A stretch of DNA of 64,000 nucleotides from Pocillopora damicornis (taxonomy: Eukaryota). Made by a program: the position numbers and the translations under genes. Shown one piece after another: positions 1,898-26,400 of the stretch. Under the pieces are notes generated by a model. It was not told where the DNA came from and searched no databases. It saw only the letters and a list, made by a program, of their open reading frames with translations. Location: NCBI RefSeq assembly GCF_003704095.1, contig NW_020845410.1, positions 1,116,001 to 1,180,000 of the forward strand. Direction: 5' to 3'. The stretch's first letter is position 1. Every line of letters starts with the position of its first letter.

Positions 1898-3245
1898 TTC
1901 GAGCTCTGACAACACAGTCCGAAGGTAATCTCCTTTTCTTTTTTGATACGTACACGAGCAGGTGGCACACGCTTTTTAAGCCCAGGAATGTCTGTCATTG
2001 GCTAAAAAATTATGCAAGTCGGAAGAGAAAGGCGGCATTTGTTACAAAAGTCACGCTCGAAGTAACTTGAGCCAATGAAGAGAATAAATATGGAACGTAA
2101 GATTAAACAAATTTGGACGTACATGCGACACTTTGTGTTGAGTGGGTTATTATTTAAGAATCCACTCGTTTGCATCAGCACATTTGCATTTTTATTTCAC
2201 AAAAGACCTCGAGGCAACCGAAAATCCTTGTGAATTCGTTTGAAAAAAATCGTTTTGCATTGTCTTAAGACGCCATAAGTCATCAGACTACGCCAAAACA
2301 GAAAACATCTGGAATTAAATGGGCGTTTTGAATTCGTTACTTTGGTTAAACTTCCCCCCTTTATTGACATTCACTGATGCAGCTTGCAACATTCGAAAGC
2401 AGCAGGATTATTGTTGCCATGTTTATCTTTTTCAAACTTAGCACTCCGGTTTGGCTGCTCGATCGATGGGTGGCCTGATAATGTTACCCATCGGATGCTA
2501 ATAGCTACTTATTGAACGAGTGTCCACAAACTAAAACAAGATTACAATCGGGATCTGTTCGCTGCAGAGTGTTATCCTCCCGAATCACAACGAAGGGCTC
2601 GGTTAAGACTTATTAGGTGTGTATTTAATGGAAAATACATGTTGCTTTAGGGAATATGAAATGGATAAAAAACAAAACGAAATGAATAACTGGAGTTTTT
2701 ACAGTCACGCTCCCACCAGGATTGCTCAAGCTTCTCAGGTTTTTAAGAGAGACCCTGGAAGTGAAATTTAGGAGGTTCTTCGTCCACTGTTGTTTTGGTT
2801 TTAGGAGCAAAAATAATGGGAGGACCCGGGGAAAACCTTTAGAAGAAGAACGAGAACCAAAAACAACGAAGCCGATATTTTCTTCCCGTGGCCCAGTCCA
2901 CGCCGCACAAACGACCCATCGGTCATATTCATTAACACCGAAAAATAATACTTTTTATTCGCCGTAAATGGCAACACACACTTGTCAAAGGCTGTTCTTT
3001 CTCGGCTGCAACTGTCCTTTATCATACACTTTATCATGGACATACTTACTTCTAACAGATACTCATTTCGCGGAAGCTCTTATGAGCATAATGACGTTAA
3101 ATCCTTGTAGTGCTGGGCTTACCTATTTTCACGGACAAACATGATAAATACAATAATTACACATGTCTCCATGAAGCATTCCTTGTAACTAGAAAAAGAA
3201 ACATACAATTCAGTGGTAAGGAAGGTTACAAAGATGCAATCAGTC

Positions 3246-6200
3246 TTACAGGACAATTCTTTCTTCAGTTTTATGAGGACTTCCTGATTTTTTACTGCTA
3301 TTGGCAGCTATCTTTGCATCCTTCTCCGATAAATCATGATTCTTGGCACCAACTTCCTTTCCGTCGTTTTTCTGGCTATGGTTAGGTTCACCACCCTTGT
3401 TCTCTGTTTTCTTCTCATCTTTGACAGAAACGTTTTTCTTAGACGTATCCTTGACCTCGCCATTTCGCTCCCTTTTCATTTCCTCCCTGGCCTCCTCTGA
3501 CTCTTTTGGATTTGACTTCTCCTCTTTTTTGGGGGAACTTTCCTTTGATCCCGTCACTTCGACAGCCTCCGTTTCATCTTTGTCACCTTGTTCGTCTTCT
3601 CTATCCTCAGCTTCGTCGTCATCGTCTTCGTCTTCCGACGACTCACTTTTCTCGAGGTCGGCTTCATCCGGAACATAGTCCGGATCTTCATCGGAAACGT
3701 AATCCTCGCTGACGTGTATAAGCTCCACTATCAAGGTACCGTCTTCGTCTTCTCTGTCGTACCTTCGCTTCCGCTCGGGAGAAACGGGGAATGGTTGAGA
3801 AGCATCGATGATTCGAGAATATTCTGCTTTAGGTTTGTAGCGACTGGATCTTGTCGGGTTTTTCTTTCGTCCAAGCCGCTCCTGTAGGGCAGGGGAAAGC
3901 AAAAGTTTTTTGCAAAATTCAAAAATGCTTAATCATGCTGAGTAATCGGGGTTCTTTTCTTCCTAATCTAAAGGAGTACACGAAGAACCACCTATACTTG
4001 AATGAATAATTTTTAACTATGAGGTGCATCTAAAGATTGGTATGCTATCGTTACTTCCAATATTGATTCATAAATATGACACTTTTGATTAATTTTACTC
4101 CAATATCTCTGATATCATAGAATGATTGGTGAACACATTTGTCTCAAACGGTTATCTTCAGTAAAGAAATTGAATTTCAATCAAAGTCTTGGATAACCAA
4201 GGCAATTAGTCTTCGGGCAAAGATACTGAAAGGTGTTCTGCAAAATACTGTTATGACATTAGCAAGATCAGTTTGTTTTTTCAGAAAGGAGTACAACAAT
4301 GTAAATGACAAACCTTTCCTTCTCCTCCTCTTCCTCCGAGGAACGACGGCAAGAAAAAAAAAGTTTTCCGTTTAGTAGCGTTCCAAACGTCCCAAAAGGC
4401 TCCGACAATTCTTCCTATCACCTATCATTGGCAAGGGTGGGTTATGAAAATTACTTTTAAAAATCGACAAATCACTAACACATAAAATGAGTTAAAATCA
4501 CAATCAGCACTTTTTGCTTTGTGTTGACGAGCTACTGAATTTACTCGATTCACTCTCGAAAGCGAAGAGTTTAACCTAAATTGTCGCATCCTCGATTGAA
4601 ATTAGTTTAATTTACCGATTAGAACGTATTTATACTGAATTGGTAGCTGGATTTGTTCCTTTACCGTTACGTTTTGCAGCAGGATTTGAGAGATGCCCCA
4701 TGACCACGTGGCTACAGTTTTGGCGCCATCAATCGCAGCTAGAGTGACTCGACCTGGAACCGAGGCTGCCCGCGTTATAACCTAGAAGAGTCACATAAAA
4801 TTCAAGGAAATCAAACAGAAGATCGAGAGCACGGCTTAGAATTCGAATCATGCACTGTCATTATTGCGCCTTGTCAAATAATTATTCATTTCCTTGCCTT
4901 TTCCCCTTCACCCTTGATCACATTAACGATTCCCTGGATTCGATCGACTTTACTTTGGGAAAGCGGGGCTTCAGCAGCACCCTCCTTCATACATTTCTCT
5001 TGAGGTGGGAGGAGGTATTCAATTGCTGCTTCTGTAACAGTGAGTAAGACTTCCGCAAGATCTGACTGCTCCAGTTTCTTAGCTCCGATTGTCAAAACCT
5101 GTCAACAGAAACAAAAGACATATCAATTATAAGGTTTTACCCGGGAAGACGTGGGGTAGCGCTTACATCCTAGAATTTAATTTTCTCTTGTAAAGACAAA
5201 AATAAAATTACCCAAGCTGGAAACAATCCAGCATACCCCTGAAATAAAGACACCATTTTAAACATCGTCATAAAAAAAATCCTGTCGTACGCGACCACGC
5301 CCTATAGCCCTGATCCTCCATTTTGCAATAAATTGAATTATGTGCCAAGTCGACATGCCTACCCTTGAGTGGGTGTGCAGCCCTGGAAGACGTTCTTAAA
5401 TAAAGAACGTGAGATGAGAAGCTATTTAGCATGATAACAGAGCGGTAATTTACCTAAGAAAATAGCAAGTTTCGATTCATAACAATGTCATCCTCGGCCT
5501 TACTCCTATTCAAAGGTTTGACAGCCATGCACAAATGGGAAAATAAACCATTGTTGAAGGTGCAACATTGCCATTCCCAGCTCACAATTACGACCGTTTC
5601 GTACCAGATTTAGCACAAAATTTCTGCACCTTCATCGCAGATCGTATTGTCGATAATGACGTCTTGACTCAAAATTGATATTTTCCTGTAAGAGGCTTTT
5701 TACTTACTTGTTCTGTGTTGTCCTTTATTATCGGCCATTTTTTCTCCAGGAATGTCAGTCCATCACAGGCCATCGAATCAGCTTGGAAAACTGTTTGAAA
5801 ATGTATTATGACCCTTCACACCCCTAAAATTGGTATGCATATTCTCCATACTGTTCTCAATACATTTCCTAAGGTGCTGACTAGGAGAATTTGTTTAACG
5901 ATCAGGAGCTTTAGTTAGTGATCATTTCCTTTATTCTCGCGACCTTAAAATTTGGTCCAGAGGCGATATTGTTAGGAGAAAATAGATGCTAGTCACTCTT
6001 AGAGTCAAAGGGTTAAATTTGATGCTGCAGTCTACTCTTCAAGGTAAGGTATTTGCAAACCCTTGCAAAATGATTAAAAAAATCTTTATCACACTTTTCT
6101 TTGCTTCAAAGCCTCATATTTTGCATATTAGGGGAAGGTGAAATTGAACTCTTGCAGGAAACATGGTAATAACTGAATTTTGCAAAGTCTAACAAAATAT

Positions 6201-6691
6201 TACTAATTGTAATATCAAAGGAAAAGGCTCCGATAAGACTGTACCCAAATTGACTTAATTGTGTTTGAGAATCTAAGCGAGACAAAATAAACCAACCCTT
6301 CCTCATCAAATTGCACACGTCCTCTCATTAACAAAGCCCTACGATTTTACTAGCGGTCTCAGACAACCTTGACGAGCTGCAGAAATCCATCAATAAACTT
6401 ACCTTTTTCTTCGAAACCTTCTTTCACTTTTCCCATCACACCAGAGGAAGGCAAAGAAGTATATGTCACCTTGGCGGCGACCACAACTGCGTTTATCGAC
6501 ACCTCTGCAGCGCTCAACCCGACCATCGAAACAAGACTATACTCCTTCGTACGTTCGTACATCTCAGACACTTTTTCACAAGTTGATTTTACAATCGGTA
6601 ACTGAACCAGACGGTTGAAAACTTGTGGCATTTGCAAAGGTGACCTCTTGGTTTCGTGAACGCAAGCTTCTTTATCCCCTTCGCCTGCCAT
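3246..6691 (-). CDS. Perilipin/PAT-family lipid droplet protein A (~477 aa) with long acidic C-terminal tail
   Basis: Exons 6691-6403, 5790-5708, 5098-4898, 4781-4665, 4421-4314 and 3881-3246 join in frame. PAT motifs: RLVQLPIVKSTCEKVSEMYERTKE and ADSMACDGLTFLEKKWPII (cf. perilipin RVxxLPLVxST...ACxGLDxxEExLPIL). Joining of the last three exons is less certain than the first three. Confidence 0.8.
5808..6016 (+). mobile_element. ~200-bp dispersed MITE-like repeat (family R1), in perilipin A intron 1
   Basis: Ends (t)gaccctt...aaagggttaa. The core (tattctccatactgttctc...aggagaatttg...gatcatttcctttattctcg...agatgctagtcactctt) recurs at ~31343, ~32796, ~33968 and ~34635. Confidence 0.8.
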
Positions 6692-8907
6692 CTGTTGCTT
6701 CAGCAAGAGGGCGTTCACTTCGACTTTGACAATCAACGTTAAAAAATCGTTTTACATATTGGCTTTATATACAGATGGTTGCATATGCACGCGGAATTTA
6801 TCTTGCTATTTGGTCAGTTCCTGCAAAACGAATGAAATTAATTTAGGTGACGATAGAATATTGTTTCTTTGCTCTTTTCTTTCATGTGTGCCGCTGGAAT
6901 GGACAGTTTTGCATACTTTTGGACGCATGGGAAAATATTGGAGCGAAAAAGAACCTTGCACCCACTCTATTTTCACCCCCTCCTTCCCAAAACGTAGTTC
7001 GATAAATTACAGAATTAATTTTGCACTGGGATAAAAAAACAAAATTAAAAAAAAAAAAATAAGGAATAACGTCACTGAGCAGTCAATCTATTTTTAAAGC
7101 TAACAATCTTTTGAGGGCCTGTGTGGTCTTAATATTAATCATATGATCAAGTGATCAAGTTAGTTTAGCGAAAATATGTTTTTGACGTCATTAAAATTGA
7201 GAGTTCATGTAAATTTAGAACAAAAGAGAAAATGAACATATCAATTGTAATTAATAATTAGCCTTAATGCATTTTTTTAGAATCAGTAACTGACTTTTGG
7301 CCTGATTTCATAAGCTGAATCGAGACCCTACCGGAAGGCATGACGATCACATGTTTTCAGAAGTCATTAACGGAAGTTGCAGTGCCAGTATTAAGCCTTG
7401 AGATTTGGCAAATGCCAGTATCATGCAAACAGACTGGTGTGAAAGGTCAACGAAATTCCTACTTCGAGTGTCAAAACAATAAAGTTTTTCCATATCAGTT
7501 GCTTTTATTGAGCTTTGAACGCGTTCAAAGTCGAACTCCCGGACACAAATCCGTTCTAACATAGTATTGATGGTATTTTTGAAAATAAAAAAGCGCCGTG
7601 AAGAGCGTCTCTTGAGTGTTCATTTCTTAAGGAGGAATCTCGAAAATAATTATTTTTTTTTTCAACAAAATTGAGATATAGTTCGTGAAATAATGTTTGA
7701 AGCATTGAAATGGATCGGCTTGAATTGAGGTAAATTTTTCCGTGAACTGTTATTTCCGCCGGGAATCCTCTTAACAAATGCTAACTATGGATGTTTTGAG
7801 AGGGATGTTTTTTCGCCTTGTCACGAGCCAAAAGGACAAAGGGACAAAGAAAAAATTCTGGACCTTCAGACTTTCCGATTCCACGCTCCGATGCACTACC
7901 ACTAATCTTGTCATAGTTTTTAAAATTAAACTGATGATCTTCAAACTACGTTTTCGAAACCATTTTAAACGCGAAACTTTGACGATGCTTTTCAAAATCT
8001 AAGCGGCTTCCTTTCCAATGTTTGTCTACTCCCCAAGAGGAAACAAATATTGGAGCGAAGAAGGAAAAACTTAAAAAAAGCTGGCATGAAGGGAAATAGT
8101 GTTTACAAAGGTAAAATTTCATCATGAGATGGAGAACGAAAGCGTTTGTTTGTCGAAAATGGCTAATAGTATGAGTTACGTAAGTGCTTGAGCCTTTCGA
8201 ACCTTTTCGAATTTCTGTTCGGTGTTGCCCCAGGGCCTTGAGTTTGAACTGGAATAACAGAGGCAAAATGTTTCCGTATTGGGTATAAAATAAAGAATTG
8301 GTACCCAAAGAATGTTGCATTCTTCGCGGGACTTTTTTTTTTCTTATTTTATATATGAATTTTCTGGCGGGGTATTAGCGTAAGGGGCAAAGTCTCCCGT
8401 TCACCTTGAATGAACTTCAGTCGTGTTTTATGTAACGTCACACAATATTCCATCGAAGGTTCCTACACAAAACCTTGTCCGTGGGAAATCTTTGTCCCAA
8501 AAAGGCAATTTTAAACGAAAGGAATTGCAAAGTACGATTGAATTGCATCAATTTTCATGTAGAGACGGGAGAGCACGGGAGAGTAAATAAAACCCAGAAG
8601 CAATGTCATTAAACTCACTGTCCTGTCACGTGAATGTCTGCGTGTCGTAACGAACTTTGTCCGTCAAGAACTCCGGAGCAGACGGTGACATAACTTATTT
8701 TATAAATATGAAACCTTCTCTGATTGGTCAGATTAGTGACGGAACGAAACTGTTTCTAAGCTTCATTGTAATTGGTCAATTTTCACTCTCTGCCCAAGAG
8801 CAAAGTCCGTACTTGAACACATTAATAAGCGTCTCGATACCTTGTCCATTAATCTTAAAGTTACTTCACATTGTGTCCTTGCGTTGTTCATACTGATAGT
8901 GCCACCC

Positions 8908-9187
8908 ATGCAAAGTGAAGAAATGGCTGCTGAAGTCGAAAGGATGCCTGAAGCTGACAATAAGTCTTTCACGACTCGTCTGTGTGAATTGCCTGTAGCT
9001 TTAGCTGCTGTCAACCAACTCTCAGAAATTTACAGTGCGGTGAAGGAGCGCAATTGTGTCACCAGAATGGCTTTTAATGCTGGTGAAAAAACGATCGATA
9101 TGGCGAATACTGCTTCTAAGCCTATAATTCAGGCAGCCAGCACTTGTTCGCTGTCTAAACCCATCGTTGGAACAGTTGAATGTGCTG
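8908..9187 (+). CDS. Perilipin B first coding exon, copy 1a (alternative first exon, or start of a separate paralog)
   Basis: MQSEEMAAEVERMPEADNKSFTTRLCELPVALAAVNQLSEIYSAVKERN...TVECA G|GTAAGT. Phase-1 donor compatible with exon 12465. Near-identical protein to 11440-11686. Confidence 0.75.
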
Positions 9188-11439
9188 GTAAGTCAGTAAC
9201 GACTGGTTTCTCTCGTAGAAATTTATAGGGTTTGGGCTAATAAAATCCGTCGCTTTACACGAATGTCATATTTTAATAACGCTGTTGTGCAATTTGTGAA
9301 TTGATAAATTGCGGTTTTCATAAATTTGGCGTTTGTCGTAGTTTGTGGTCAGAGTAATTTGTACTACGTCCTAAATATATGTGAACTTTGACCAGAACAC
9401 TGTTTAGTTTTATAGTTGTAGTTTGCCTTTTAGTGATAACTTGTATTTCTCTCGTGGTTTTGTTCATTGTTTCAAAATAATTTAATTGTTTGAAATGGTG
9501 TTTTAGGTAAGGCTTGTGGCGCGACGTCTTATTATGCAAATCATTACATCATTAAGATACGTGTTGAACGTCACGAGCTTTTGGAAGCAACGATGTGAAA
9601 AAATAAATTATTTCTGTCAATACAGTTGATTTTTAAGAAGACATTTCTAAATATGAATAGACCAACATTCCCTCTAGTAGTAAGTGTCAATTATTTGCTT
9701 CAGCCAACACAACTTTGCCAAATTCATTTTCTCACAAAAAGATAATTGAAGTGAATAGTGAACACAGCTGGGCAACTTCTCCACAACTCACTGAACCACC
9801 GTTGTTGTTTTAACCTGTTATTAAAATCGTGGTGACAAGGTAGAGGTGGCTCTACAAGATGTTTGGTGGTAGTTCTTGGGATAAATTAACAATGATAACA
9901 ATAATAATAATAATAAAGTTTTTTGGCACCTTTAGAAAACTTGATAAGCTTACATTACTATATAGAAAAAATTAAATTAGTCAAAATCTAAAAATTTTTT
10001 TCTTACAACAGTAATAAATAAAATAAATGAAATAATTAAGAATTAGGTGACATGAAAGNNNNNNNNNNNNNNNNNNNNNNNNNNNNNNNNNNNNNNNNNN
10101 NNNNNNNNNNNNNNNNNNNNNNNNNNNNNNNNNNNNNNNNNNNNNNNNNNNNNNNNNNTTTGGTAGTTTCCTATCAGCCTGCAAATGAAAATGAGCAATT
10201 GATTGAAATTTTCCTTCTTTCCAGACTAAAGTACTTACAGCCATTAAGTGTTTTAATCAGTTTTACAAAAATAGCATTAAGTTGAAACAATTGTTTCTGA
10301 AAATTTTTTTAGTTTTCACATCTTGATTAAGTTGGTGATGGTAATGATAATATGAAGACATTGTTTTACAAGAAAACAAATATTTACAATCTTAACATAA
10401 AGAGTCAATGAGTGTAGTGAAAGAGCATAAATAAATTTTGTATTGTAACCATTTGCTTTGTTAGACGTTTTTATCTAGCTGGAGAATGTTTGACGTCTTT
10501 CTGTAAAGGGTTGTTGTGTTTTGCTTGTCTGAGATATATACCTATCCTCTGTGGTTGGATTTCATTTTCCAAGTTTCAGCACCATGATTTTTTCGAATTA
10601 CCAACTGTGAAGTATCCTTCAGAAAATACGAAAAAACGCTCCTTTCTCTTTCTCACCCCCTTCAACTTATACTTGCTTCAGTTTGCCTGGGAATAATGAG
10701 AAAAACGATACCTGCAGTCTAGCTGTTGGGGGAAATGTACACAAATGAAAAAAATTGCGGCAACTTGCTAAAGAGGATCTTCCCATCTAACAACCTCAAA
10801 GGTCTCCGAAACTAACTGTGATTATACTTACCTCGTGCATAGTAGTTATCTTGCATTAGGTGGACTGTACGTGCCATTCATGATGGCCCTCGCAAAACTT
10901 TGTTTGCTTCTCTACGAAATTGTGACAGTTAACATTTCTTGTTATTCTGCCAACAACTCGATTATCTACAGAGGTGGAAGTGAAGAGTAGTTAAAAGTAT
11001 CCGAGAAATAATTCCTGTCTAGCCACTCCCATGAGAGAATTAGGCACGTGTCCAATGAAGACTCGAACCATGATACACCACTCCAGGGAACAAGTTCCCT
11101 CACCGAAAAACCCAACCACCACCGCGTAACGACAAATTCTTAAGACTTAACTGAAATTTCTGTATGACGTGTTTTTATTAAATTTGTCAACGAAAGGTTT
11201 GCAGCGTAGTTCAAGATGTTATTGGAGAGAGCTGGGCACTACTCAGAATCATTCCAGATTTTGCTGAAGCAGGGTTTCTCCCCAGTCCTCTTACCGCTCT
11301 TGAAGGAGTGGTCACTTAGTCAGATCTAAAAACAGTCTTGTATCGTTTTATCGGAGTGAGCACATCATTTACAATCAATTGTGTTTTAATCTCGAGTTTG
11401 TGTCTTTACTGGTGGGACATCGGCCATTTATCGAGAAAA

Positions 11440-14400
11440 ATGTGTACTGAAGTAGAAAACAAGTCTTTCACGACTCGTCTGTGGGAGCTTCCTGTGGCAC
11501 TGGCGGCAGTTGATCAACTATCACAAATTTACAATGCTGTCAAGGAGCGAAATTGTGTCACAAGGATGGCTTGTAATGCCGGTGAAAAAACGATCGATAT
11601 GGCGAATTCTGCCACTAAACCTATAATTCAGGCGGCCAGCACTTGCTCGCTGTCGAAACCCATCGTTGGAACAGTTGAATGTGCTGGTAAGTTTAAAATT
11701 TTTCCCATTCGATGACGTATTTACGGAAGTACGACGCTTACGAAATGTTTACTTGACATGTATTCCAGTTTGTGATAGCTTTCTCGTTTACTGTTTATTG
11801 TACCTTAATGTACTTGCTCCTTTGTCAACCATGATTGTGCTAGACTTCTGCCTTAATAGTAATTCGTCCTCGCTTTATTTTGTAATGTAATCGTATTTCC
11901 CTCGAAGGAAACAGTTCGTGAATGGACTTTGGTCAGGGTACTTTGACCTTTTTCTGTTCCGAGTAACGATTTCTGTTTATCGCTTCATTTATTTACTTCA
12001 GTGATATTGAACTTTAATTGTGTTTCAACTAATTATTTTTGTCGAGTGTTGTAATAACGACGAAGTAGGTTCAGAACAAAAGAATTGTTATTGTACAATG
12101 GAAAATCGATTACCGAGGTTAAGCGAAGAAAGGGTGGTTGTTTAACGAACGTTCCGCTAGAAAGCTTGTGTAGTGTTCAATTCTAAATTATGAATCCGTT
12201 TTAACTATCCATGCTTGGATCCTCTCCATATCCTATAGATCCACTATCTATATCTAGCACAATCTCTTTTTTGGCTTCTTTCTGCGCATAATTTTTTTTC
12301 TTTTGGAGGGAGGGATTTTTCCGTGAATGATTTGTTTTATTCTCCATGAAACCTCTCAACTTCAACCCTGACCTTCCCTCCCTGCAGAGAGCTTTTCGTG
12401 ATCAATCACCTGAGAACTATTTTTCTTTTTGAATTCAAAATAATTGTTTTTTTTTTAATCATAGCTGCAACCATTGACCGTGTGGCATCAGGAACATTAG
12501 CCATAGTCGAAGAGAAGTGTCCCATCATGACCAAAACACCCACGGAGGTATAACTCCTTGACTCTCTGTCTTCATTACTTGAGGGTTACTTCAAATATTT
12601 ATAAACTCGATTTCTTGGACATAGTTCTAGGGGATCCTAGTGCAGTTAGATCTTAAAGTGTGCAGCAGGCTGACAAGAATGATTTATAATTTTTGGTTAT
12701 GTTGAATGAATATTGACCAACATTATCTTTTAGAATGTACCCACTCAGTGGGTGAATTGTTGATTTTGCTGGGGCCAATTTGTCTTTAAAAAAAATGTTT
12801 AGCTCTCGAGAGGCATCAGGTCATCATGTGTTGACATTTTTTTTTTGTTGTGTTTTGATCTCAACAAAGCAACTTTGATTTGATATGTTGCACTGAGGAA
12901 AACAATTTTTGTGACTTGGAGATTAACTATTAATGGTTGTTGAAGGTTCTATTATAACGAAGTGGGATATTAGCACTTTAAAGTTGTCTGATATTGTGAT
13001 TTTGAATTGAAAGAGACAAAATGGTGTCATTATGCATGAAGGAAATTTGGGAATATGAGTAAACCCTATTTGCTTGAAATCTATAACATACTAAAAACTG
13101 CTATGTAGAAATCTTCTTCGTGTTATTGTTGTGATTGGTTAAATGATAATTTTCCTAGATCAAGACTACTGTGGCTGATACTGCCACAGAGTACTACAGC
13201 AAAGTACAAAACAGCTGTGTTGTGCAGATGTTGGCTGCCAAGACAGAGGAAGTCTTGGATTATAGTGAGTTGATTGCTGAAATGGCATTGCCAACTGACA
13301 GCAACAATGAAGAGGACAAGAAAGAACTGGAGAGAGCTGATGACGTTGCCAGCAAAGGAGCTTTATTGAGGGCTGTAACCCTTAAGAACATGGTGACACG
13401 TAGAGGAAAGAAGAAACTGATGACTTTCAGGCCTGTGAAGATCAGTGTTGATGTGGTATGTAACAGGTTTTAGATATGATCACTTAGTGCTCGGTAGAAA
13501 CCTGTTTGCCAGTTACTAATGGAGTGAGTTTGTTTATTACACTTTAACAGGTGACATGTTTACAGGGACACGTGAATGACTTACTAGGTAAATCATCTGA
13601 TTGCAGCAAGAAAGTCTATAAGGCATCCATGTACATCCCAAACTTGGCTCTCGGTCTTTCTGGTGAAGTGATTGTCTGTACAAAGGACCTAGTTTTTGCT
13701 CTTAATCAGGTAAATATGTGGGCTACTCTGATATGTTTGGACTTAAATATTCTTGGCAGTGCTGTATTTTTTATCAGAAAACAAAATAAACTGTTTTAAT
13801 TTTGACAAATGCATCACACTATTCAACACTGGATTCAACCCCATGAAGTGCAGGCTATTGGGTGAGGTACAAAGAAGAATTATTGTGAAAAACAAACTAC
13901 TTTAAAGTCTTCAATTTCTGCCTCTAGTAAGTCCCATTAGCTCAACTAAAATATATTTTTGTAAGAAAAGAAAAACCAATCAGCAAAAGTCCAACCATTC
14001 AGGAAACCTTTGTATGCTTTGCTGGTTTATTTTTTGCAGAAACTTTAAGAATACATCTTGATGTGATGAACTTTGGCCAGTTTTTTTTGTGGCTTGCATC
14101 CAAACAAAAGGAACACAGCCATTTGTACACCAATATTGTTTGTGGTATAACATTCTGAAATGTAGTACCAGACAAACATTCATTGCTTCTTTCAGGCTCA
14201 CTCAATAAAGGATATGCCCTCTTGTGTGGCCAATGTGGTGGTCAAGGCCATTCAGCCACTCTCCGATGTTACAGACAAGCTGGCTGGCTATGTATTTGTC
14301 CCTCCACAAGTTATGACTGAGTACCTTCTGACATCTCGCCCAGTTCAGTGGATTCTCCCTGAAATTGTCCCAGTTCAAGACTTGATCACCAAAATGGATA

Positions 14401-15557: not shown

Positions 15558-17289
15558 TCATGGTGACTTTTTGCCATACTTGATCTCTTGTGTTGATGTT
15601 ATAAGTTTGTGTAATGCCGCATCTGAGCGCCACCTTAAAATTGGTAGAAAGTCGAACCTGATCAACAATGTTAAGCTGAAATGGAATGGTGCCAGAAAGA
15701 ACTCATTTGCCAGATCCAGTATTTTAAATAGCAAGTTGTCTTCTTTAGTTGGTAGTCTCTGGGGAGTTTCACCTTCAAAGAGAAGGTGTCCCAAGAATTG
15801 AAGCACCAGGCATAAACTGATGACAATGCCAGCCTGGAAAGTTGTTACGCCAGTGTGTATATATACAGCGTAGTATGCCAAGACATTGTACAGAATGGAA
15901 TATACAAACTAAGAAATGAACATAAACAAAGAGAACATTAATTTAATTCATGTAGATGTGTTTAAGAGCAAGGATGATTTAACATGAAGCCTTATTTTTG
16001 TCAATGTTAAAATTTTAAAGAAGCATATTGAGCCCTTGGCAAGGAGCTGCAGTGTACTCTATGATCCACTCAAATTAACAAGAGTGTATGGGTGTGAAAG
16101 AGAAAAATTAACTTTCGTATCAGGGATATATATCCATATCCATCCTGGAGGCATTCAAAAGCTAAATTTTTCAAAGGAAAGAATGAAACTCAAATAGAAT
16201 CTCTAGGGGTCTTGGGTTGGGGATGTAAAAGCAGTGATCTTTGTTATAGATGACTTAAAACTTAAACTTATGACATTTACAACAATAGCACTTACCCCCA
16301 TTGGAGGCTCTTGTGCAATACACAGGAGACATTTCAAAATAATAAGTAACAACTGGAGAGAGATGGGTAGAATATTGCGTCCAATACATAGTATAGCCCA
16401 AGCCTTGGGCCAAGATGTCACAACATGAAGTATAACATTCCTATACAAATAAGAAATTGAGGTTGAGTCAAAGATTCATCAGTTAGCGGGCAATCTGTTG
16501 GTTAGTTGCAGATTTCTAGCATATAATTTATTTACTTAATGTGTATTTATTATTTTAACTGATGATCAATTTCCAACAATCACTTGGGTCACTGTTTGAG
16601 GCCAATGAATGAAAGATAGATGATTACTAATTAACTTTCCAGCTTGTAAATATGTGGGTATATCATTGACAAGAATATACCAATTCTATTTTGTTGAACA
16701 AGGAACTTGGGAAGATATCTGTATAAAATCAAACTCTCCTAAAACAAAGCCGTATTCCTAAAGGCAATCCACTTTTTTGTCATTGTTTTTTTTTTATCCA
16801 AGAACTGCATGCATAATGAAGTATGGGGATGTGCGGAAATCTTGCCAGGAAGGGGCGCAAGGAGGAAATAGTGGCTCGTTTAATAAAAATCTTTGTAAGC
16901 AAGAATTAGGGAGCAGTAAACCAGGGTTAACAAATTAACAATCCTCGGGGTCATGATCAGAATGAAGGTTACAACAAGAGTTACATAAAATGATCTTGAG
17001 AATTATGAATGGTTTTTCTAATTAACGTGTAGATTTGACGAAACATGACAATGTTTGAATTTAAATCAAATTTGGGTTTAGAAGATCCTCTAAAAAGGAC
17101 GCGATCGTGAGAAACATTCCTAATGAGGATGGAATCGTCTAACTTAGTTTGAGAAAAACCATTCAATCGATCTGTCAGTGTCTGTTCGATCGCCACTTAC
17201 CAAAGTTTCTTGTGTGAAAAGCGTTTGGTAGCAGTTTGCAGGGAACTGTCAATAAAGTAACCAAATCCCAAATTCAAAGACTTAGACAT
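15558..17289 (-). CDS. Mpo1/DUF962-family membrane protein (2-hydroxy fatty acid dioxygenase-like), ~194 aa
   Basis: Exons 17289-17201, 16440-16296 and 15908-15558 join in frame. Motifs HKKLWNVILH (HxxxxNxxxH), QFLGHLLFEGETP (QFxGHxxFExxxP) and FFLAPF resemble yeast Mpo1/YGL010w. Hydrophobic segments lie between them. Confidence 0.75.
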
Positions 17290-17628
17290 CTTCGCGTTTC
17301 TCTGCCTTGGAGGCGATGAATATTCGACGTGCCTTGGTGAAACTCGACCGAAAATCACACATAGACGAGTAGAAATGAACAACCACTAAGTCACGCAATA
17401 CGTGACGAGTTTGTCACGCCTTAGTTATATTTCTAATTATTTGGAGGAAATTTGTAAGGAAGTAATTTCCGCAACGAGCTTATCTGGTTTGGCCGGGGAA
17501 GATTTTAGAAAATGATAATAAAATGTCGATGAATCTGGCTACTATATCGATTGTAAATGTGCTTCCAACCAGGCCACAAAGATCTTTGGTTTTCAAGGAG
17601 TGGTCGCTAAGTCCTTGAAAGAAGAAAA

Positions 17629-20600
17629 ATGTTTATTATTCCTTTGTTTGGTTCATCGAGGAATTCCTCTTTTGCCTCTGTGCAGCAGGTATGTACTGTT
17701 GTTTACATATTTGATCAGGTTATATTTTCCCAGTGACAGGGGAAGCCTGTTTTAATAGGAAACTGAATTATGCACCATTTACATGCATTTGAACACAGCT
17801 TCCGAGAAGACACTTTCTGTTAAAGAAGTACGTTAAATTAAGGAAAAAATGGCCCTCAGCATTTTCATGGAGTACTTTTGATAAATGTTTTCTTACTACT
17901 CACTACACAGGAGCTGTAAAGAATAGCTCCTGTGTTTCCATCCAGGTCAAATGAAATATTTCTGATTGGAAGTAATTTCTTTCCTTAAAATATTCAAGAT
18001 GGAAAATACTCAATTTTGTTTTTTGATCATTTATGGTTTACTGTTTTGCCGCTTGAAGTTTTATTGCAGCAGAGGGGTTTCCCCAAGCAAAGTACTTCAG
18101 ATAGGCAAAGGAAAGAATTCAGTATGGAGCCTTGTAGGGAAAATGATGATTTCTCAGTGGCTACCAATAGAAATATACCTCTTGCTATAGATTCTAATTC
18201 CGAGAACGGGTCTACCACAGAGGAAATCAGAACTGAAGTGGATCACAACTCTCCAAAGCAGTTTGAGCCTGATTCTAATCCTTTAAAGCCAAACAAGTCT
18301 CACAATGCAAGTAACAGAGAAGTACTAGCTGTCTGTGTACCTCAATTTGTTCAAAATAGTAGAATTGTGATCATCTTTATTGATGCATGCCAGGCAGTTT
18401 TAAAGATCTGGGGGTCGTACAGTAATTTGCAGCACTTGTTGAGAAAGCATGGAATCAACACACATAGATTCAGCCAATCAGAACTGAGAAAATTAAAGAG
18501 CATGGGGGCAGTGGACATGCAGGTGAAACTATGCTCATTTATCAGTGACAAAGATTTTCGTCAAATACTTATGAAGTATGACGAAATTTGCAACACAAAT
18601 AAAGCCAAGTTTATACACTTTTTGACTCCAGTTGAAATCAGTGATAATTATTCAGACTCTGTAAATGTTCAAGGTGTGCAGAGCAATATTGGAAACAATA
18701 AAAATTCCAACATCACTTGGCCATCACAAAACACCATTTCCTCATTGCATAGGATTCATGCATATATGATCGAAAACCAGGAAGTTATTACTTTATCTGA
18801 ATTAAATTCCTTGTTTGTGCATTTTGAGAGGCCAGACCTTTTACTCCAAGTTCTATCAACCTTAGAAATAACTGTCAGTATGTTAATGTCCAATAAGCTG
18901 GAGAGAGTAGGGATTCCTACTGCCATTACTGATGGTGACTGTGCAAGATTGTTTATTAATAAGAAGGATTTTGATAGAATTCTGCAATACAATGCAGCTT
19001 TCCTCAACCAAAATCCACCAAAAATTGTATGGATACATTTAAATGAATCACATTTACTTAGCAAGGGACAAACGTCACAAAGATCAAACAGTGTTGCAGG
19101 ATATGATGAGCCTGAGGCTGTTGATTCATTGAATAAATCTTATGATTATATTGAGAATTTCAACTTGAATACCTGTCAAAGTGAAATCAGTGCTGAAGCT
19201 CACAGAGCTAACTTGCAAAGTGGCCTGGGTAAGAAAGATGAAATGGATGATTTGTCAGATATGCTGCATGTTGTGCCACAAAGTGGAAGTCCCCCAATGT
19301 CACAAGGAGGTGGGACAAATAGATGCAGATATATAATTCGTACCTGTCGTGTTAATGATGAGGTTGTTGTTTGCATTCCTGATCTTCAAAAGGCTGTTAT
19401 TGACATCTTTAAACAACGTGTGCAAGTGGGAAATTATATGCACCACCTTAACATTTCAACAAAAAGGTTTGAACGAGTTTTCTTGCAGCGGCTAAAATCA
19501 CACAATATTCTGAGTTCGAGAGCAAAACTGTGCACCTACATCACCAAGACTGATGCTGAAAGGTTATTGCAAATGTACCATGTAAATCATTGTGACAATG
19601 GAGACAAAATTCTACAAAACATTGAATGGAGTGAGCCAATCAATTTAGAAGATGCAGTCAACAATGTCTGCGGAGACAGTCAAAGGCATCTGGTTGAACA
19701 TGGTGGCCAAGAAACTTTGAAAATTCCTTTGTTCATTGTAAATGATCAGATTGTTGTGTCAATGCCTGATGTTCACAAAGTTGTGCAGCTTTTGAACGGC
19801 CAAAGTGTCCAGTTGCAGTACAATCTCCAGAAGTTAGGAATTGTCAAGTATAAGTATCCTTACAATGACATTTGTCAACTGAAAGTTCTGACCCAGATGA
19901 AAAGGCCAAGTTTGCGCACATACATCACTAAGTCAGATGTTGATAAGGTGTTGAAGTTTTACATCACACCAGAAAATGAAACCAGGTTGCAACTGATTGA
20001 GTGGCAGACTCCAATAGCAGTGGAAAGTGTGGCCTGCAGCTCAGCATCTAGTGGAATTTCAAGTGTAGATGCTGAGTCCATCAGCACAGAGAACAATGAT
20101 GTAAATCCTGCAGATGGTGAGACATGTGACTTGTATTCCTTTTCAGATCTTTTCAAAGCCTTTGTCAGTGATGACTCAGAATCTGTGGATAGCTTTAATG
20201 ATGATGACGATGACGACTTGCCAGAGACATTGTTCCACCCCTCATCGCCATCACCATCATCAAGGGCTGGCACCACCAATCCTTTACAGTCTACTCCAAT
20301 CACTTTCTACACAAGTGATAAAGTGAATTCTCCTAGTAATCAGTTACATCCAGTTAAACCATTGTTCTCAAACAATCACTTGCCACCATTACATCTTCCT
20401 GGCAGACATGATAGAGATGTTAATCAAGTAGGACTGGATGTCAATCAAAGAAGTCAGGTCAATGTCGAGGATGTGACAAGATGTTGGAGCTGTGACACTC
20501 CATCTTGTACCAAGATGCATCCAAGCAACATCTTAGGAAATAGTGCTGTCACAACTTGTAAAAGTATTCATTCAAAAATTTCAAGTGATGGTGGAGCAAG

Positions 20601-22912
20601 CCAGACTCTTCCAGGTACTTCAGTAAAGTTGACAAACTGTGGTAAGCCCTCAGGATAAATTATTAGACAGTGTAACTGTATGTAATTGCTCAGTTGTCTG
20701 CTTGTCTATCTTTTTGCCTTCATAATATTCCTTTGTTTGTCTGTCTCACATTCTACTCATTTAGCAATGGAATGGTTGGTTGTTTCCCAGGGGTGAGTTA
20801 GCCTCCATCTTTTTGTCAGCCTCTCAGCTTAGTTAGGTTTTGATTGCTTGCTTGCTTGCCAAGAGTTTGTGTGTTTGTGTCTTTCTGTCAGTCTGAATAA
20901 AGGGGGTAAGTTTCTAAACAAACTGTGGTGCTACCTTGATGGGGAGTATTATGAGATAATTTGGTTTTATCAACTGAATTGATAATGTAAGTTGGTCACC
21001 ATAAAGAGGAACTCTTTACAATGGCCAGTCTATGTTATCAACTCAGAGTTGGTAAAACCAATTTTCTGTCATTCAGTCTCATCTGTTCTTTACCTATGAA
21101 GGCCTGTTTCTTTCCCTTTTTGCTGTGTACCTGCCTTTCGGTGTGACTCTGTTAATCTGTTGGTCTGTTTCTGTCTGACTGCCTGCTTGTCAACCCTTCA
21201 GCTCACTTTGTAATCAGTTGCTCGGCTGTTACGTCGGTCTTTGTGTGTCTGTGGAGACGTGCTTTCCTGGTTTTTTTTTCATCCCTGTTTACTTAGTGTG
21301 TTAGTGTGGTAAGGGAAAGCATTGTAAATATGAATGTAAAATTTTTTTCCAGACTGTAGCCATCATAGCTACAAAAGAACCAGGGAGGTTTTAGTCGGTG
21401 AGGGTGCATGGATGGAACAGTTGGCTAAAAAACACAGGGGTAATTTGAAACCTGTACGGCTGTCTTGAGTTGTAATATTTTAATTTTTATAACAGTTCAG
21501 GTAGATACATTGTACTTGATCAATGCTTAAAAACATTCTTCTTGATTTTGCAGCAGACCACAATGACCTTCTGAAGACCTTGCAGCACAAAGAAACAGAA
21601 CTGAACATTTTATATGGTAAATGATATAAGAATTCCTTACCCAGAAAACGTTGCAAGCAAAAGGAAATTGATCAGCCCTTGAATAGACCCAAAATTGATC
21701 AATGACAGACTTTTTTTTAAAGAATATTTCAGGCTGTAGAAGACTAAAAATTGATCTTCTTTGATTTAGTTTGTTGAAGTAAATAATGTTGTTATAATTC
21801 TGCTTTTCTTAAGACGCATATCAGGAACAAATAAAACGGGAGAGGAAGCAAAGGCTGGCAGTTCAGCGAGAATTGGATCAAGTGAGGAGTATGTACTCGA
21901 TATTTATCATATTGAACTGAGAGAGAAACTGCGTCCCTTTTCTTGTGCGGCTCGCACTCGCTTCGCGCATTTCTTAGGCTTGTTACTTAGTTCTATTTTT
22001 ACGATGTTAAAATTGACAGCTTTTTTTTTGGTCTGGGCAGATTCCAATGCGGAACTGCTACAAAACATCGAAAGAAAGAAAATAGAAATGAAGATTTTGC
22101 ACGGTAAGCTAGTGTCTTCTGCAGGCTCTTTTCTTTACAACAATCTAGAATAACAGTTTTACCTCGAAGGGTCTTCATGATATATTTATTTCGCTTCCAG
22201 AATCTGTGTGACATGTGTCGAGGGAATGAAAAAAATGTCTCCCAAGATCACCAAAGTGTTAAAGACGCAGGCCCAGTTGTTCAAAGGCAGATAAGGCCAT
22301 CCAGCGGATAAGTGTTATCAAAACGTATTGTGTTATCTACCAGATACAGATTTATCCAGTGGATGGCGTAATCTTCCCTTTGAAGAAACCGGGGCCTGAA
22401 AGAAGTCTTCATTACGTTAGGCACTAGTAGTATTTCCAATACAAATCCGATTCTCGATAAAACCGGTCATTGTTTAATTTTCTTCAAATTATTTTAAGTT
22501 CTTTGATTCAATTGTTGTTTCAGATTCACACAAGCTGCAGATGGATTTGGAGAAAAAGAAGAGGGAACAGCTTCAGATTGAACTTCGTAATCCTCGAGGT
22601 AAAATGTTTAGAGTATCACTTCTGTTTTGCTAATGAAGCGAGCACACTGAGTCAAGCAGAAGCAATCAGAATAGCTCTCCTTTAATCCCGAATACGGCTC
22701 GCACACCGCCATATTTAAGCTTAATGATCCAACTCTTTTTATGCTTGACGGCTTGCTTTCGCCTGAAGGACATCAGCCAGGATCAGTAGCGCCATCTCAA
22801 AACCTGTGTCACACTGTCACATATCGTCGCATCCTCAACTATGTTTTTGTTCTCTTTGATAGGTGGTGAAGCACGGTTCAACATTGTTCATGTGAAACAA
22901 GAACCTCTGTAG
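17629..22912 (+). CDS. Protein with four tandem Ski/Sno/Dachshund-like domains and a C-terminal coiled coil (~990 aa)
   Basis: Putative exons 17629-17688 (start uncertain), 18070-20641, 21353-21397, ~21554-21616, ~21814-21888, ~22525-22598 and 22863-22912 join in frame. Repeats such as LRKLKSMGAVDMQVKLCSFISDKDF and LQRLKSHNILSSRAKLCTYITKTDAERL resemble the Dach/Ski domain (LRGLGAIQPGVNRCKLISRKDF; CGLITKTDAERL). Tail: YQEQIKRERKQRLAVQRELDQVR...IVHVKQEPL*. Confidence 0.75.
20900..21064. repeat. Imperfect inverted-repeat element in an intron
   Basis: ttggttttatcaactga..ttgataatgtaagttggtcaccataaagag is roughly inverted to ctctttacaatggccagtctatgttatcaactcag..ttggtaaaaccaa. Confidence 0.55.
22268..22397. 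mobile_element. Palindromic MITE-like element
   Basis: Terminal inverted repeats caggcccagttgttcaaagg ... ccctttgaagaaaccggggcctg, with internal atccag..ggat repeats. Confidence 0.65.
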
Positions 22913-23404
22913 TAAAACGAATGATATCAAGCTTACTGCAAATTCAGATGTGGTGGCATCCTTCCAAGTTGACTTAGCTAAATATAACGGCAAACCAGCT
23001 CCACAACAAAGAGAGTTACAAGAGTGACCACACTGAATATATATAAACTTTACATACTGGAGTTCATTTATTAATTTATTGCCAGCTTTCGAATTCTCTC
23101 ATGCCTTGACATCAGCCATAAAGTGTTTAACTCAATTGATATAAAGAGCTTGGAAAACAACTCTTCTTGTCTTGTGTCGTTTCACTTCTGTGTTCTTTCA
23201 CCCTCGCAATTGTCGCTTTCTTGCCTGCCACGTACATTTATTACTTTTGATCTTTCTCCCTATCTATTGCTTGCTTACTTTCTGTAACCCTTGACAAAAG
23301 TTCATTACGTCCTTGAAATAAGAGCGTTGCTTGTGAGGTGCACTGAACTTCAAGCCTCGTGAAACACGCTGTTTCTCCTTTTCTCGGGAACGATTTGCCT
23401 TTTG

Positions 23405-26400
23405 TTATGACAGGAGTTGGTCAAGCTTCCAGTTCGTTGCTATTTTAAAGGGAGGAGGTTTTGGTCTTTGCAGTTCATCTGCAGGTAGAAATAACGGTAG
23501 TGATTTTTAAAATGATCCAAGATTGTTTTAGGCTTTTTTTTAGGGACAGATCCAAATATTTTGAAGATTCTACTTCGCTTGAAACCATTTGTTTATCAGC
23601 GCCCGTGCTTGGTGCCGTTCTTACATTCCCGGGGTAAGTGAAAATTTTCCGCGCTTCACGCAATAGTAAATTGTGTATTTTGGCACAAAGCAAATTCAGG
23701 CCATCTTCAGGATTTCTAGTATTTAAAATTGTTTAAAATGTTTAAAATTAAACATGTACCATCGCAAACGAAATAAAAAGGCAAACACTGATGAGTACCT
23801 CTTGGCTTATTTAACGTCGTATTCTGATCACTTCTCATCGCTGCAATGATGCTGTTAACAGTAGCTCCTGGACCTGTGATCTGGAAAAAGGCGAATTAAA
23901 ATTAATGAAACCCAACTCTATCGTGAAGGCCACGTAATACAAAATGGTTGAAAAAGAACCGAGCTCTGTACTTCTGCAAGTCTCGAAGATCGTTTGGAGA
24001 TAATAAGTTGTTGCTTGAAGATGAACGATTGTCCTCCGATTGCTATCGGAAGCGGAGGGTAGACTTTAAATTACGAAATGACGTGGTTGGGAGAGTAAAT
24101 CACTTTAAAAAGACTCACTGACGTTTTGTAACGAGAAAGGTACAAACTGAACAAATCTGAGTCGTCATTAGGAGCCGAACACATGCCTTCGCCATCCGCT
24201 TCTCTACCACTAAGCTACTGAGAAATCGATAGAGAGTTGGGTAATTTTACATTCGGCTTAACGTACCTGGGAAACTTGACTTGAATTGGTGGAGCTTTCC
24301 TCTGGGGGCCAGATAACGCCGATCGATGATTCTATCATTGAGATTAGCTTTTCAAAGTTGGTTTGAAGGACGGCAGCTTGTCCCGCATGATCAAACAAAA
24401 CCAACATCTTGAGCAAGGATGCCATGTCGTCTGCAAATGAAGTAATCGGAAATAACGTTGCATGCACCACGATACTCTAGTTATAACTGACACTTTACTG
24501 CACATGCGTACTTCAGCCTTGTGTCTATGCTTGCGTCTTTACGACCAGACTCAAATGAATCAGTGGTTCAGCCCCTAAATCTTCTTTCCGCGCCCTTTAT
24601 GGGCCTGCCTTGATTTATCCAATATATAGGGCGCTAATACATGAACTGGACTCGCATACCTGTGGTCTTGTGAACTGTTTGAATAATGTCAGAAAGTGCT
24701 TCCATCAAGGCTAAATCCTCAAATCTACTTCCCTCTTTCAAGCTGTACATCTTTCGTGCAGTTTTTCTTCGATTTTTGGAGGATCGCCTGTCAAAAATAA
24801 ATTTTAATTACAGACCTTACTTAGCCGCAAAGAAGTTTAGGAAAGATGTGACTTAAGTTTAAAATAGGACTTTTGTCTACCCGGTTGATCTTGACCCCCG
24901 GGAACTGGTGCTAGAGGCATACTCCGAGTTATCGCCTACGCTGCTCGTGTCGGAGAACAGGTCCGTATCATCTCGCGCCAGTCCACTCTCTGTAAAGGAA
25001 GACACCGGCGAAAAAATTTCGAAGATGATTGGAAAAAAGGAAATTATTGGCTGACTTAAAGGTTCAGGCAAATGAACCAGCATGGACCAAAGCAACCAAA
25101 AAAGTTACCTAAAAATGTCGTGTTATACCTTGATATTCTACACTTTGTTGTTCTTTCAGTTCTCTGACAACTTTCAGTCGCTTGGTGTATTTATTGAACA
25201 ATTCCTCCTGTTCTTGTATGGAACTCAAGTGGTGGTTATGGGCTGAGATTAAAAAAATTAAATTAAAAAAAACCGACCTTTATTCTTGAAGCTTCCTATT
25301 CTTGCAAGGAAAACAAGTTCAAGTGAGCCTTGCAAATATTTTCGGTTAAACTTTGTTAAAGAGATGACGACTCCTTCAACTCTTGAAATGACGTTTGTTT
25401 GTTTGTTTTTCTTTTATATATCTTTCGGATGAAAAAAATCCCGCGAATCCTCTTCAATGATGACTCCGCAGATGATCAAAAATTCCCGTTTTGCGAAGAT
25501 AAGTAGTAGTTAAATTACTATTACAAACCTTCTTCCAACGCGCCTTTCAAATGTGTTTCCACAATATCTGTCCGATCATGTTTATGCATCTATAAGGGAC
25601 ATAAACACGAACCCTGTAAACGGCGACGCTATTCAAAATTAGCCCTAAGTTAACTTAAACCGCTTCCATCCCCCATCGAGTTTAAAGGGCTTGCGTCCCT
25701 AGATAAGTCACACGAAAGGAGACGAACTGTTCCGTCGAGTTTTAAGCAAAACTGTTATGTCGCTTTTTTCCTCTGGAAATTCGCTCTCTCTACTGAAGGC
25801 ACGTAAGTCTGAAAGGAAAAATAATCCTGCCCCAGTCTTACACGCTCACTCACTCATTCGCTCCAGGCTTCCTCTGTCCCGCTAGTGCTAGCGAGACCAT
25901 CGACTTGACTAGTGAAAGCGTGCTTCAAAAAAATTCTTACAGAGACTTGATAATACGCTTGAGTTCCCGTGATAGTACAGGAGGGACACCGTCCTAAAAC
26001 TCTCTAACTCACCAATCTCAGAGCTTCTTCCCACTGCATTCCGTCGATAAGAACAGCAATGGCTTCCTCAGGATCCTACGAAACCAAACAAAAAAGCACA
26101 AGGACATAAATCCAAACCAAGAAACAGCAGGTCTTCAAAATTTGAAAAGAATGAAAATGTAACAATAGAGAAGGAATTCAAATGAAAAACCATAAATCTA
26201 AGGCATAGTGTAAAAGAGTTTAGAAATTGTCATTAGCTGGTGCGGGGATAAACGCACTAACCCTGAGTGATGATATATCAATCACTCATAACTAGACTCT
26301 TGTGTTCTCTGCAGTTCTTTACCTTTGCATATTCTTCCAAGACTCTGGAGGCTTCAAGGGAACGCTTATGTCCTTTCAGATAACCTACAGTTTTGCAAAC

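Follow-up and report, generated by a model that had tools for sequence, protein, structure and literature searches.

The stretch of the Pocillopora damicornis genome examined here (64,000 nucleotides; NCBI RefSeq assembly GCF_003704095.1, contig NW_020845410.1, positions 1,116,001 to 1,180,000 of the forward strand), referred to as the window and numbered from its first letter, contains an open frame of 880 codons on the + strand (18016-20658). The question that this locus raises is whether the frame encodes several copies of the DHD, the domain of the Ski/Sno/Dac superfamily, and what such a protein might do. Ski/Sno/Dac proteins are central to TGF-beta/BMP signalling, to eye and limb patterning, and to cancer, and their DHDs are nuclear modules: those of Ski and SnoN bind N-CoR, Smad and SKIP, and that of DACH1 binds DNA and co-repressors. 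To our knowledge, every studied protein of the superfamily carries one DHD. An initial annotation of the window had proposed four tandem DHD-like domains and a coiled coil. The analysis leaves almost no doubt about the four-fold DHD architecture, and the gene, here called the tetra-DHD gene, is a single-copy, spliced and expressed gene of a pocilloporid stony coral.

The four DHD repeats

The Pfam model PF02437 (Ski_Sno_DHD) matched the whole frame with 54.5 bits over three stretches, above its curated cut-off of 24.5 bits, a sequence match that places the product in the Ski/Sno/Dac (DHD) superfamily. The four repeats were delimited as follows:

18301-18660, + strand: R1, the repeat closest to the Dachshund DHD (PF02437, 19.9 bits, E 6e-4)
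18721-19080, + strand: R2, the most divergent repeat (PF02437, E 0.12; folded core at about 18745-19041)
19300-19680, + strand: R3, the most Ski-like and most conserved repeat (PF02437, 36.2 bits, E 5e-9)
19690-20049, + strand: R4 (no PF02437 match when searched alone; folded core at about 19714-20004)

These segments lie where the initial annotation had placed its repeats, and they could be aligned with one another over about 105 columns with six invariant positions. Profiles were built for each repeat from 15-18 coral orthologues, using an 18-sequence alignment in which the domains were conserved and the linkers variable, and were compared by hhalign. The pair R3-R4 matched with 99.6% probability (E 1.8e-24), R1-R4 with 97.4%, R1-R3 with 97.2%, R2-R4 with 94.4% and R2-R3 with 79.7%, while the R1-R2 match was weak (26.6%). 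The four repeats are therefore all homologous, and R2 is the most diverged of them.

R3 contains the motifs CIPD and YITKTDAERLL, and phmmer aligned frame residues 433-518 to the solved SKI DHD (1sbx, E 0.0017), including the ITKTDAERL helix; the echo of a Ski motif (TKTDAERL) that had been pointed out earlier is visible in this alignment. Forty columns of R3 were invariant among 18 orthologues, and its profile found its best match in Ski (15 bits). The R1 profile matched the Dachshund DHD exon of the same genome with 30.6 bits, and R1 of Nematostella exceeded the PF02437 cut-off by itself (28.1 bits).

R2 and R4, the repeats worst seen by sequence searches, were folded with AlphaFold2 from family alignments. 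The models of R4 (predicted local distance difference test score, pLDDT, 81.9; predicted template modelling score, pTM, 0.75) and R2 (pLDDT 79.9, pTM 0.71) were confident, and their elements came in one order: a beta hairpin was followed by helices, a short strand and a long helix, with another strand at the end. When both were compared with the PDB using Foldseek, the solved DHDs 1sbx (SKI), 3eq5 (SnoN) and 1l8r (DACH1) ranked top, with probabilities of 0.99-1.00 for R4 and, for R2, of 0.82-0.94 for the SKI/SnoN chains and 0.54 for DACH1. The next-best matches were INI1/BAF47, DNTTIP1, the PUFD domain of BCOR, and Mbp1; INI1, DNTTIP1, BCOR and Mbp1 are published structural neighbours of true DHDs (PMC4509781). 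The models conform to the DHD fold, a mixed alpha/beta variant of the winged helix with an extra helix in the wing, and R2 and R4 are predicted to adopt it. The N-terminal winged helix of INI1/SMARCB1 and BAF45a and the DHD-like domains of BCOR and DNTTIP1 share this fold class with the repeats, not family membership: they have no sequence similarity to them, occur as single copies and belong to other protein contexts. Taken together, PF02437 for the frame and for R1 and R3, hhalign for all four, and the structural comparison for R2 and R4 bear out the DHD type assigned to the repeats. A look-up of the large-exon product in the ESM Atlas gave no usable match.

Gene structure and coiled-coil tail

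RNA evidence was taken from Logan contigs of four poly(A) or cDNA runs (X1, X2, X4 and X9) from three studies, placed on 17300-23200; being contig sets, the runs report presence and junctions, not expression levels. Six small exons downstream of the repeats were found by tblastn with full-length orthologues. Exons were translated singly, with split-codon bases carried across, and the tail of the protein was examined via database orthologues (P0002, P0005 and P0023). The gene was composed of the following exons:

17552-17688, + strand: 5' non-coding exon, 5' end undefined, spliced to 18059
18059-20641, + strand: large exon of 2,583 bases with all four DHD repeats and the linker (open frame, RNA contigs)
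21353-21439, + strand: coding exon 2, 87 bases, phase 1-1, which carries a basic patch (KR...KKHR) and opens the helical tail (RNA joints, translation, tblastn with the Stylophora orthologue)
21554-21616, + strand: coding exon 3, 63 bases, with the first motif copy, LQxKETELxILYDAYQ (RNA joints, translation)
21814-21888, + strand: coding exon 4, 75 bases, coiled coil (RNA joints, translation)
22041-22103, + strand: coding exon 5, 63 bases, with the second motif copy (IERKKIEMKILH, then DS), 81-85% identical to orthologues (RNA joints, translation)
22524-22598, + strand: coding exon 6, 75 bases, coiled coil (RNA joints, translation)
22863-22912, + strand: last coding exon, with VKQEPL, the stop codon at 22910-22912 and a psi-K-x-E site at 22892-22903 (RNA joint, translation)

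The coding sequence occupies seven exons, 18124-20641 and the six small exons through 22912, with GT-AG introns that are all in phase 1, and yields a product of 976 residues ending in VKQEPL. Contigs from the four runs spanned 18111-20630 with no internal joint, in agreement with the claim that all four domains share one exon of about 2.6 kb; the start of this exon, earlier set at 18070, had to be moved to 18059, as the RNA acceptor lies between 18058 and 18059. Splicing of the large exon to the coiled-coil exons, which the initial annotation had left to be checked, was seen in RNA contigs that join its donor (20641, followed by GTAAGC) to 21353. Each coding junction was supported by two to four of the runs: 20640 to 21352 by X1 and X2, 21438 to 21553 and 21615 to 21813 by all four, 21888 to 22041 by three, 22102 to 22523 by X4 and X9, and 22598 to 22864, with one letter differing, again by X4 and X9. 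The acceptor of the last coding exon reads TTTGATAG followed by G.

At the 5' end, a single contig from run X1 alone joined 17686/17688 to 18057/18059 over a GT..AG intron, and an unspliced contig from run X4 covered the region of the 5' exon. Because the 5' exon has an in-frame stop with no ATG downstream of it, the ATG at 18124 is the first usable one and was taken as the start codon. The ATG at 17999, which serves as the start in a sister-species database protein (P0001), was rejected as out of frame in the window and unsupported by RNA.

Two in-frame splice variants were observed, one in run X9 only (an alternative donor at 20614, 27 bases shorter) and one in run X2 only (skipping of the 87-base exon 21353-21439). 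Since all coding introns are in phase 1, loss of any internal small exon leaves the frame intact. All four runs also carried six extra bases (AGAAGC) after 18319, adding two in-frame residues just before R1; the insertion is present in the 93%-identical protein P0001, and the genome assembly represents a shorter allele or a species variant.

The segment between R4 and the tail contains one conserved element:

20134-20229, + strand: short motif kept in stony corals, consensus YSISDLYKVFVGDDLES, then a run of Asp (alignment, translation)

In the 18-sequence alignment the columns Y671-E686 were invariant or nearly so; to read YSISDLYKVFVGDDLES as a SUMO-interacting or other linear motif would be speculative. 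From after the Asp run to 20641 the linker is rich in Ser and Pro and poorly conserved; the acidic and Ser/Pro linker described in the initial annotation is present in the translation. A match of this Ser/Pro linker to PF08347 (CTNNB1_binding; 16 bits, cut-off 22.4) was rejected as compositional.

Spread over the six small exons, where a C-terminal coiled coil had been anticipated, the tail comprises the basic patch and a heptad-repeat part of about 110 residues. One tail motif is duplicated, as LQxKETELxILYDAYQ and IERKKIEMKILHDS, and has the family form RKE-x-E-[ML]-[KR]-[IL]-L-H-[DE]-x-Y; it is kept in Nematostella, and in Hydra only one copy is evident. When two copies of residues 885-1004 of the Stylophora orthologue were submitted to dimer prediction in three runs with three controls, the tail scored 0.44 versus 0.00 for the best control. 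The runs agreed in at least 95% of contacts, pLDDT was at least 83, and the predicted contacts were parallel and in register with a/d spacing. Among microbial proteins, the mark applied for a dimer was reached by 21 of 30 solved as same-chain pairs and by none of 23 solved as single chains; for animals it was reached by 7 of 16. Judging from these models, the tail most likely forms a parallel homodimer.

The translation closes with VKQEPL-stop and retains the terminal SUMO consensus (VKQE, of the psi-K-x-E type) that had been reported from the raw sequence. The C-terminus reads VKQEPL, VKEEPL or IKQEKP across Oculina, Montipora, Stylophora and Nematostella, and the terminal psi-K-x-E is kept in anthozoans. 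A SAND-like Smad4-binding domain (PF08782) was detected neither in the window frame nor in ten family members, even when E values of up to 1-10 were admitted, as the initial annotation had also concluded; the canonical Ski of the same genome, used as positive control, gave 101.6 bits for PF08782 adjoining a DHD of 77.6 bits. Nor was there a signal peptide, a membrane segment or any other domain.

Two stretches of unusual RNA contig depth were noted within and beyond the gene. At 22225-23200 the depth was several-fold above that of the coding exons and extended beyond the stop codon, which could reflect a long 3' untranslated region, retained introns or an overlapping transcript. In all four runs, the segment 20846-21042 of the first coding intron reached a depth of about 3,000-11,700, where the exons had about 10, with many loose ends and joints flagged as 'opposite strands'; it has the look of an inverted-repeat-like element, dispersed and highly represented, rather than of a part of the tetra-DHD gene. 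Rfam gave no match within 17000-23500, this stretch included, and the region studied was free of N runs.

Distribution of the family and its place in the superfamily

The product was 71% identical to Stylophora pistillata LOC111328426 and 93% identical to the unnamed database protein P0001; stony-coral orthologues showed 37-73% identity. PF02437 scores in the orthologues ranged from 49.8 to 98.1 bits, with four stretches recognised by Pfam alone in Hydra. A profile of 18 coral proteins was searched against 1.84 billion representative proteins (E <= 0.001) and returned only 29 matches, each named one being cnidarian. These comprised Nematostella vectensis LOC116608993, Hydra vulgaris LOC101240632, an Actinostola protein and a partial protein of Myxobolus squamalis. 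Hydractinia LOC130635816, a Clytia 'SKI/SNO/DAC domain-containing protein' and the scyphozoan Rhopilema LOC135687153 came to light when Hydra was used as the starting point of a second search. The family was seen in Scleractinia, Nematostella, Hydra, Hydractinia, Clytia, Rhopilema and Myxobolus. At this library size a single canonical DHD scores below the E-value cut-off, and two-DHD proteins of other phyla could be missed by the census, a four-DHD relative probably not. Within the reach of these searches the family is restricted to Cnidaria and phylum-wide; the lineage-specific character claimed in the initial annotation holds, with hydrozoan, scyphozoan and myxozoan members widening the lineage from Anthozoa to the whole phylum.

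All complete members, including those of Nematostella, Hydra, Hydractinia, Clytia and Rhopilema, carried four repeats in the same order. The window has the full layout of four ordered DHDs followed by a tail with the duplicated motif, and orthologues fitting the tetra-DHD layout were found in Scleractinia, Actiniaria, Hydrozoa and Scyphozoa. A maximum-likelihood tree was made of 43 repeat units and three canonical coral DHDs; in it, the second repeats of anthozoans and medusozoans clustered together (support 86/82), as did their fourth repeats (support 87/79). The third and fourth repeats shared a single clade without internal resolution, which makes R3 and R4 mutual nearest relatives, in agreement with hhalign. 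Anthozoan R1 fell near the canonical DHDs, where long branches make the placement unsure. The constant order of the repeats and their grouping across classes argue that the four-fold layout most likely predates the split between Anthozoa and Medusozoa. Orthology with Nematostella was backed by microsynteny of three genes: a perilipin gene (+), a small gene (-) and the tetra-DHD gene (+).

Several departures from the common layout were recorded. The Montipora foliosa 'ski oncogene-like isoform X2' and two unnamed relatives (P0017-P0019) lack R1, and a short degenerate remnant aligns to its last helix; some stony corals may have a three-DHD version, or these may be isoforms or incomplete gene models. 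The protein KAK3728970.1 of Actinostola sp. (P0033) carries QRICH1 and DUF3504 domains ahead of R1-R2-like repeats, which could stem from the merging of gene models or from genuine domain shuffling. In Nematostella (locus L007) introns split the four repeats, which the coral has in one exon, and a potassium-channel-type gene (Ion_trans_2; L007 14660-16164, - strand) lies within one intron of the tetra-DHD gene.

The genome was scanned for DHD loci (assembly of 234.35 Mb in 4,393 contigs), and four were found: a Dachshund-type exon on another contig (L001; 112.3 bits), the canonical Ski, a gene for a SKIDA1-like protein (L005; 776 residues, PF02437 39.1 bits) and the tetra-DHD gene. As Ski, Dachshund and SKIDA1-like loci exist separately, the tetra-DHD gene is an extra branch and not the coral's Ski or Dachshund. 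The tetra-DHD family is a fourth branch of the Ski/Sno/Dac superfamily, a new architecture in a known superfamily and not a new kind of system.

With Ski, SnoN (SKIL) and SKOR the family shares a DHD of the PF02437 family, the SKI C-x-P turn and ITKTDAERL helix kept in R3, and the best structural matches of R2 and R4 (1sbx and 3eq5). It also has a heptad-repeat coiled coil at its C-terminus, where the Ski-type proteins have a dimerising one; for the tetra-DHD tail, dimerisation is predicted from the Stylophora orthologue. The family differs from them in having four DHDs instead of a single N-terminal one and in lacking the SAND-like domain PF08782, which in those proteins directly follows the DHD. 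Unlike that of Ski, its coiled coil has a duplicated motif of its own, and no sequence homology to the Ski tail was detected. The full-length family profile retrieved no Ski or Dachshund proteins at E <= 0.001, where single DHDs score too low. Dachshund (DACH1/2) combines one DHD (DD1) with a separate conserved C-terminal DD2 region; nothing similar to this layout was found in the tetra-DHD protein, DD2 not having been searched with its own model. SKIDA1 (SKI/DACH domain-containing 1), an orphan member of the superfamily, likewise has a DHD and no SAND domain, but SKIDA1-like proteins carry a single N-terminal DHD and a long Lys-rich tail, with neither tandem DHDs nor such a coiled coil.

All named family members are labelled 'uncharacterized' or generically. 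Their proteins are already public under such labels and the family is therefore unstudied rather than unseen; the initial annotation, which knew of no characterised protein with four such domains, is in line with the literature, where none was found. Labels like "ski oncogene-like" in Montipora mislead, because the Smad4-binding domain behind Ski's mechanism is missing.

Possible functions and the neighbouring genes

We considered that the tetra-DHD protein could act as a dimeric nuclear scaffold for transcription or chromatin, or as a co-repressor, and we favour this reading with slightly better than even confidence, because in every studied protein the DHD binds nuclear proteins or DNA within chromatin-associated co-regulators. 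Going by domain homology, the protein would be nuclear, and the same homology is what suggests its partners and an effect on transcription, and with it the co-regulator role put forward in the initial annotation. The tail would pair two chains in parallel, and with four DHDs per chain the predicted homodimer would present eight DHD modules per particle. Such a multivalent scaffold might gather several partners or DNA sites at once. It would do so without the Smad4-trapping mechanism of Ski and SnoN, since the PF08782 domain is missing. In anthozoans, regulation by SUMO at the putative terminal psi-K-x-E site may apply.

Several observations weigh against the nuclear scaffold. The Foldseek E-values behind the fold assignment are modest (0.013-0.1 for R4, 0.12-0.74 for R2). 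The dimer prediction rests on the Stylophora orthologue and not on the window's own spliced tail, and coiled coils can also pass such tests through memorisation by the predictor. Hydra lacks the psi-K-x-E ending, and the basic patch ahead of the coiled coil resembles a nuclear localisation signal only loosely. No paper or functional report on any family member was found in the literature.

The main rival is a sequence- or structure-specific DNA-binding factor, in which the DHDs would serve as winged-helix DNA readers, as proposed for DACH1, and with four of them per chain and eight per dimer the protein would recognise arrays of sites or bridge DNA. This is unlikely in our estimate, yet several results are compatible with it: the 30.6-bit match to the coral Dachshund DHD is the best of the R1 profile, anthozoan R1 groups with canonical DHDs in the tree, and DNA-binding winged helices, those of INI1 and Mbp1, are among the structural neighbours (PMC4509781). 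In net charge the repeats are neutral or no more than mildly basic; R1, R3 and R4 are mildly basic (median isoelectric point 7.7-8.9), which would suit contact with DNA, but R2 is acidic to neutral, and the DHDs of SKI and SnoN are reported to be protein-interaction modules that do not bind DNA. Charge and isoelectric point give no clear DNA-binding pointer and do not separate DNA binding from protein binding, a further point on the debit side of the scaffold. The rival shares with the nuclear scaffold its place of action, chromatin in the nucleus; the two part ways over what the DHDs would contact.

A bolder elaboration of the nuclear scaffold, which taken as a whole we rate as distinctly unlikely, is that the cnidarian ancestor built an eight-valent nuclear hub that has been kept in all sampled cnidarian classes, each DHD having a distinct job. 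The Dachshund-like R1 would address DNA or chromatin, the Ski-like R3 co-repressors, and R2 and R4 new partners. One polypeptide would thereby unite Dachshund-type and Ski-type branches and run a phylum-specific programme, such as stem-cell or stinging-cell differentiation, with an anthozoan SUMO switch at the C-terminal psi-K-x-E, perhaps joined by the conserved acidic motif after R4.

Re-use of DHD-like domains for other protein contacts in a non-nuclear scaffold (cytoskeletal, ciliary or of a cnidarian-specific organelle) is very unlikely. A family found only in Cnidaria and a long coiled coil, common in structural proteins, would fit it, but the tail is short at about 110 residues, the DHDs that match best in sequence and structure, those of Ski, SnoN and Dach, are nuclear, the signature motifs of Ski persist in R3, and there is no signal peptide, membrane segment or other domain. 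An annotation or assembly artefact, or a pseudogene decaying after tandem duplication within a Ski-like gene, might have been suspected from the two of four repeats that Pfam does not recognise in this species and from the Montipora-type proteins without R1, but it is refuted for practical purposes by a frame open through seven exons with canonical splice sites, spliced RNA contigs from four runs of three studies, the repeat tree and a four-repeat order kept from corals to jellyfish, synteny that holds in Nematostella, and domains conserved while linkers vary.

Four ordered DHDs with a predicted dimerising tail indicate that the DHD can be used as a repeated, multivalent module. This layout, so far seen in Cnidaria alone and likely in place since before corals and jellyfish diverged, gives the superfamily a fourth, Cnidaria-restricted branch, and its four diverged DHDs offer natural material for studying the binding targets of this domain. 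The family is clean, old and confined to one phylum, and it can be tested in model cnidarians: as orthologues exist in tractable species (Nematostella LOC116608993, Hydra LOC101240632, Hydractinia LOC130635816 and the Clytia protein), genes could be knocked out, proteins localised and partners mapped.

Upstream of the tetra-DHD gene, the first coding exon of the perilipin gene is present in two copies (8947-9156 and 11461-11655), both matching the same Nematostella perilipin exon by tblastx (54% and 57%), and further exons extend to about 14384. On the - strand, 15564-17292 holds the orthologue of an unannotated Nematostella gene of 194 residues. Its 5' end lies about 260 bases from the tetra-DHD 5' exon (17552), and this close head-to-head arrangement suggests a shared bidirectional promoter for the two genes.

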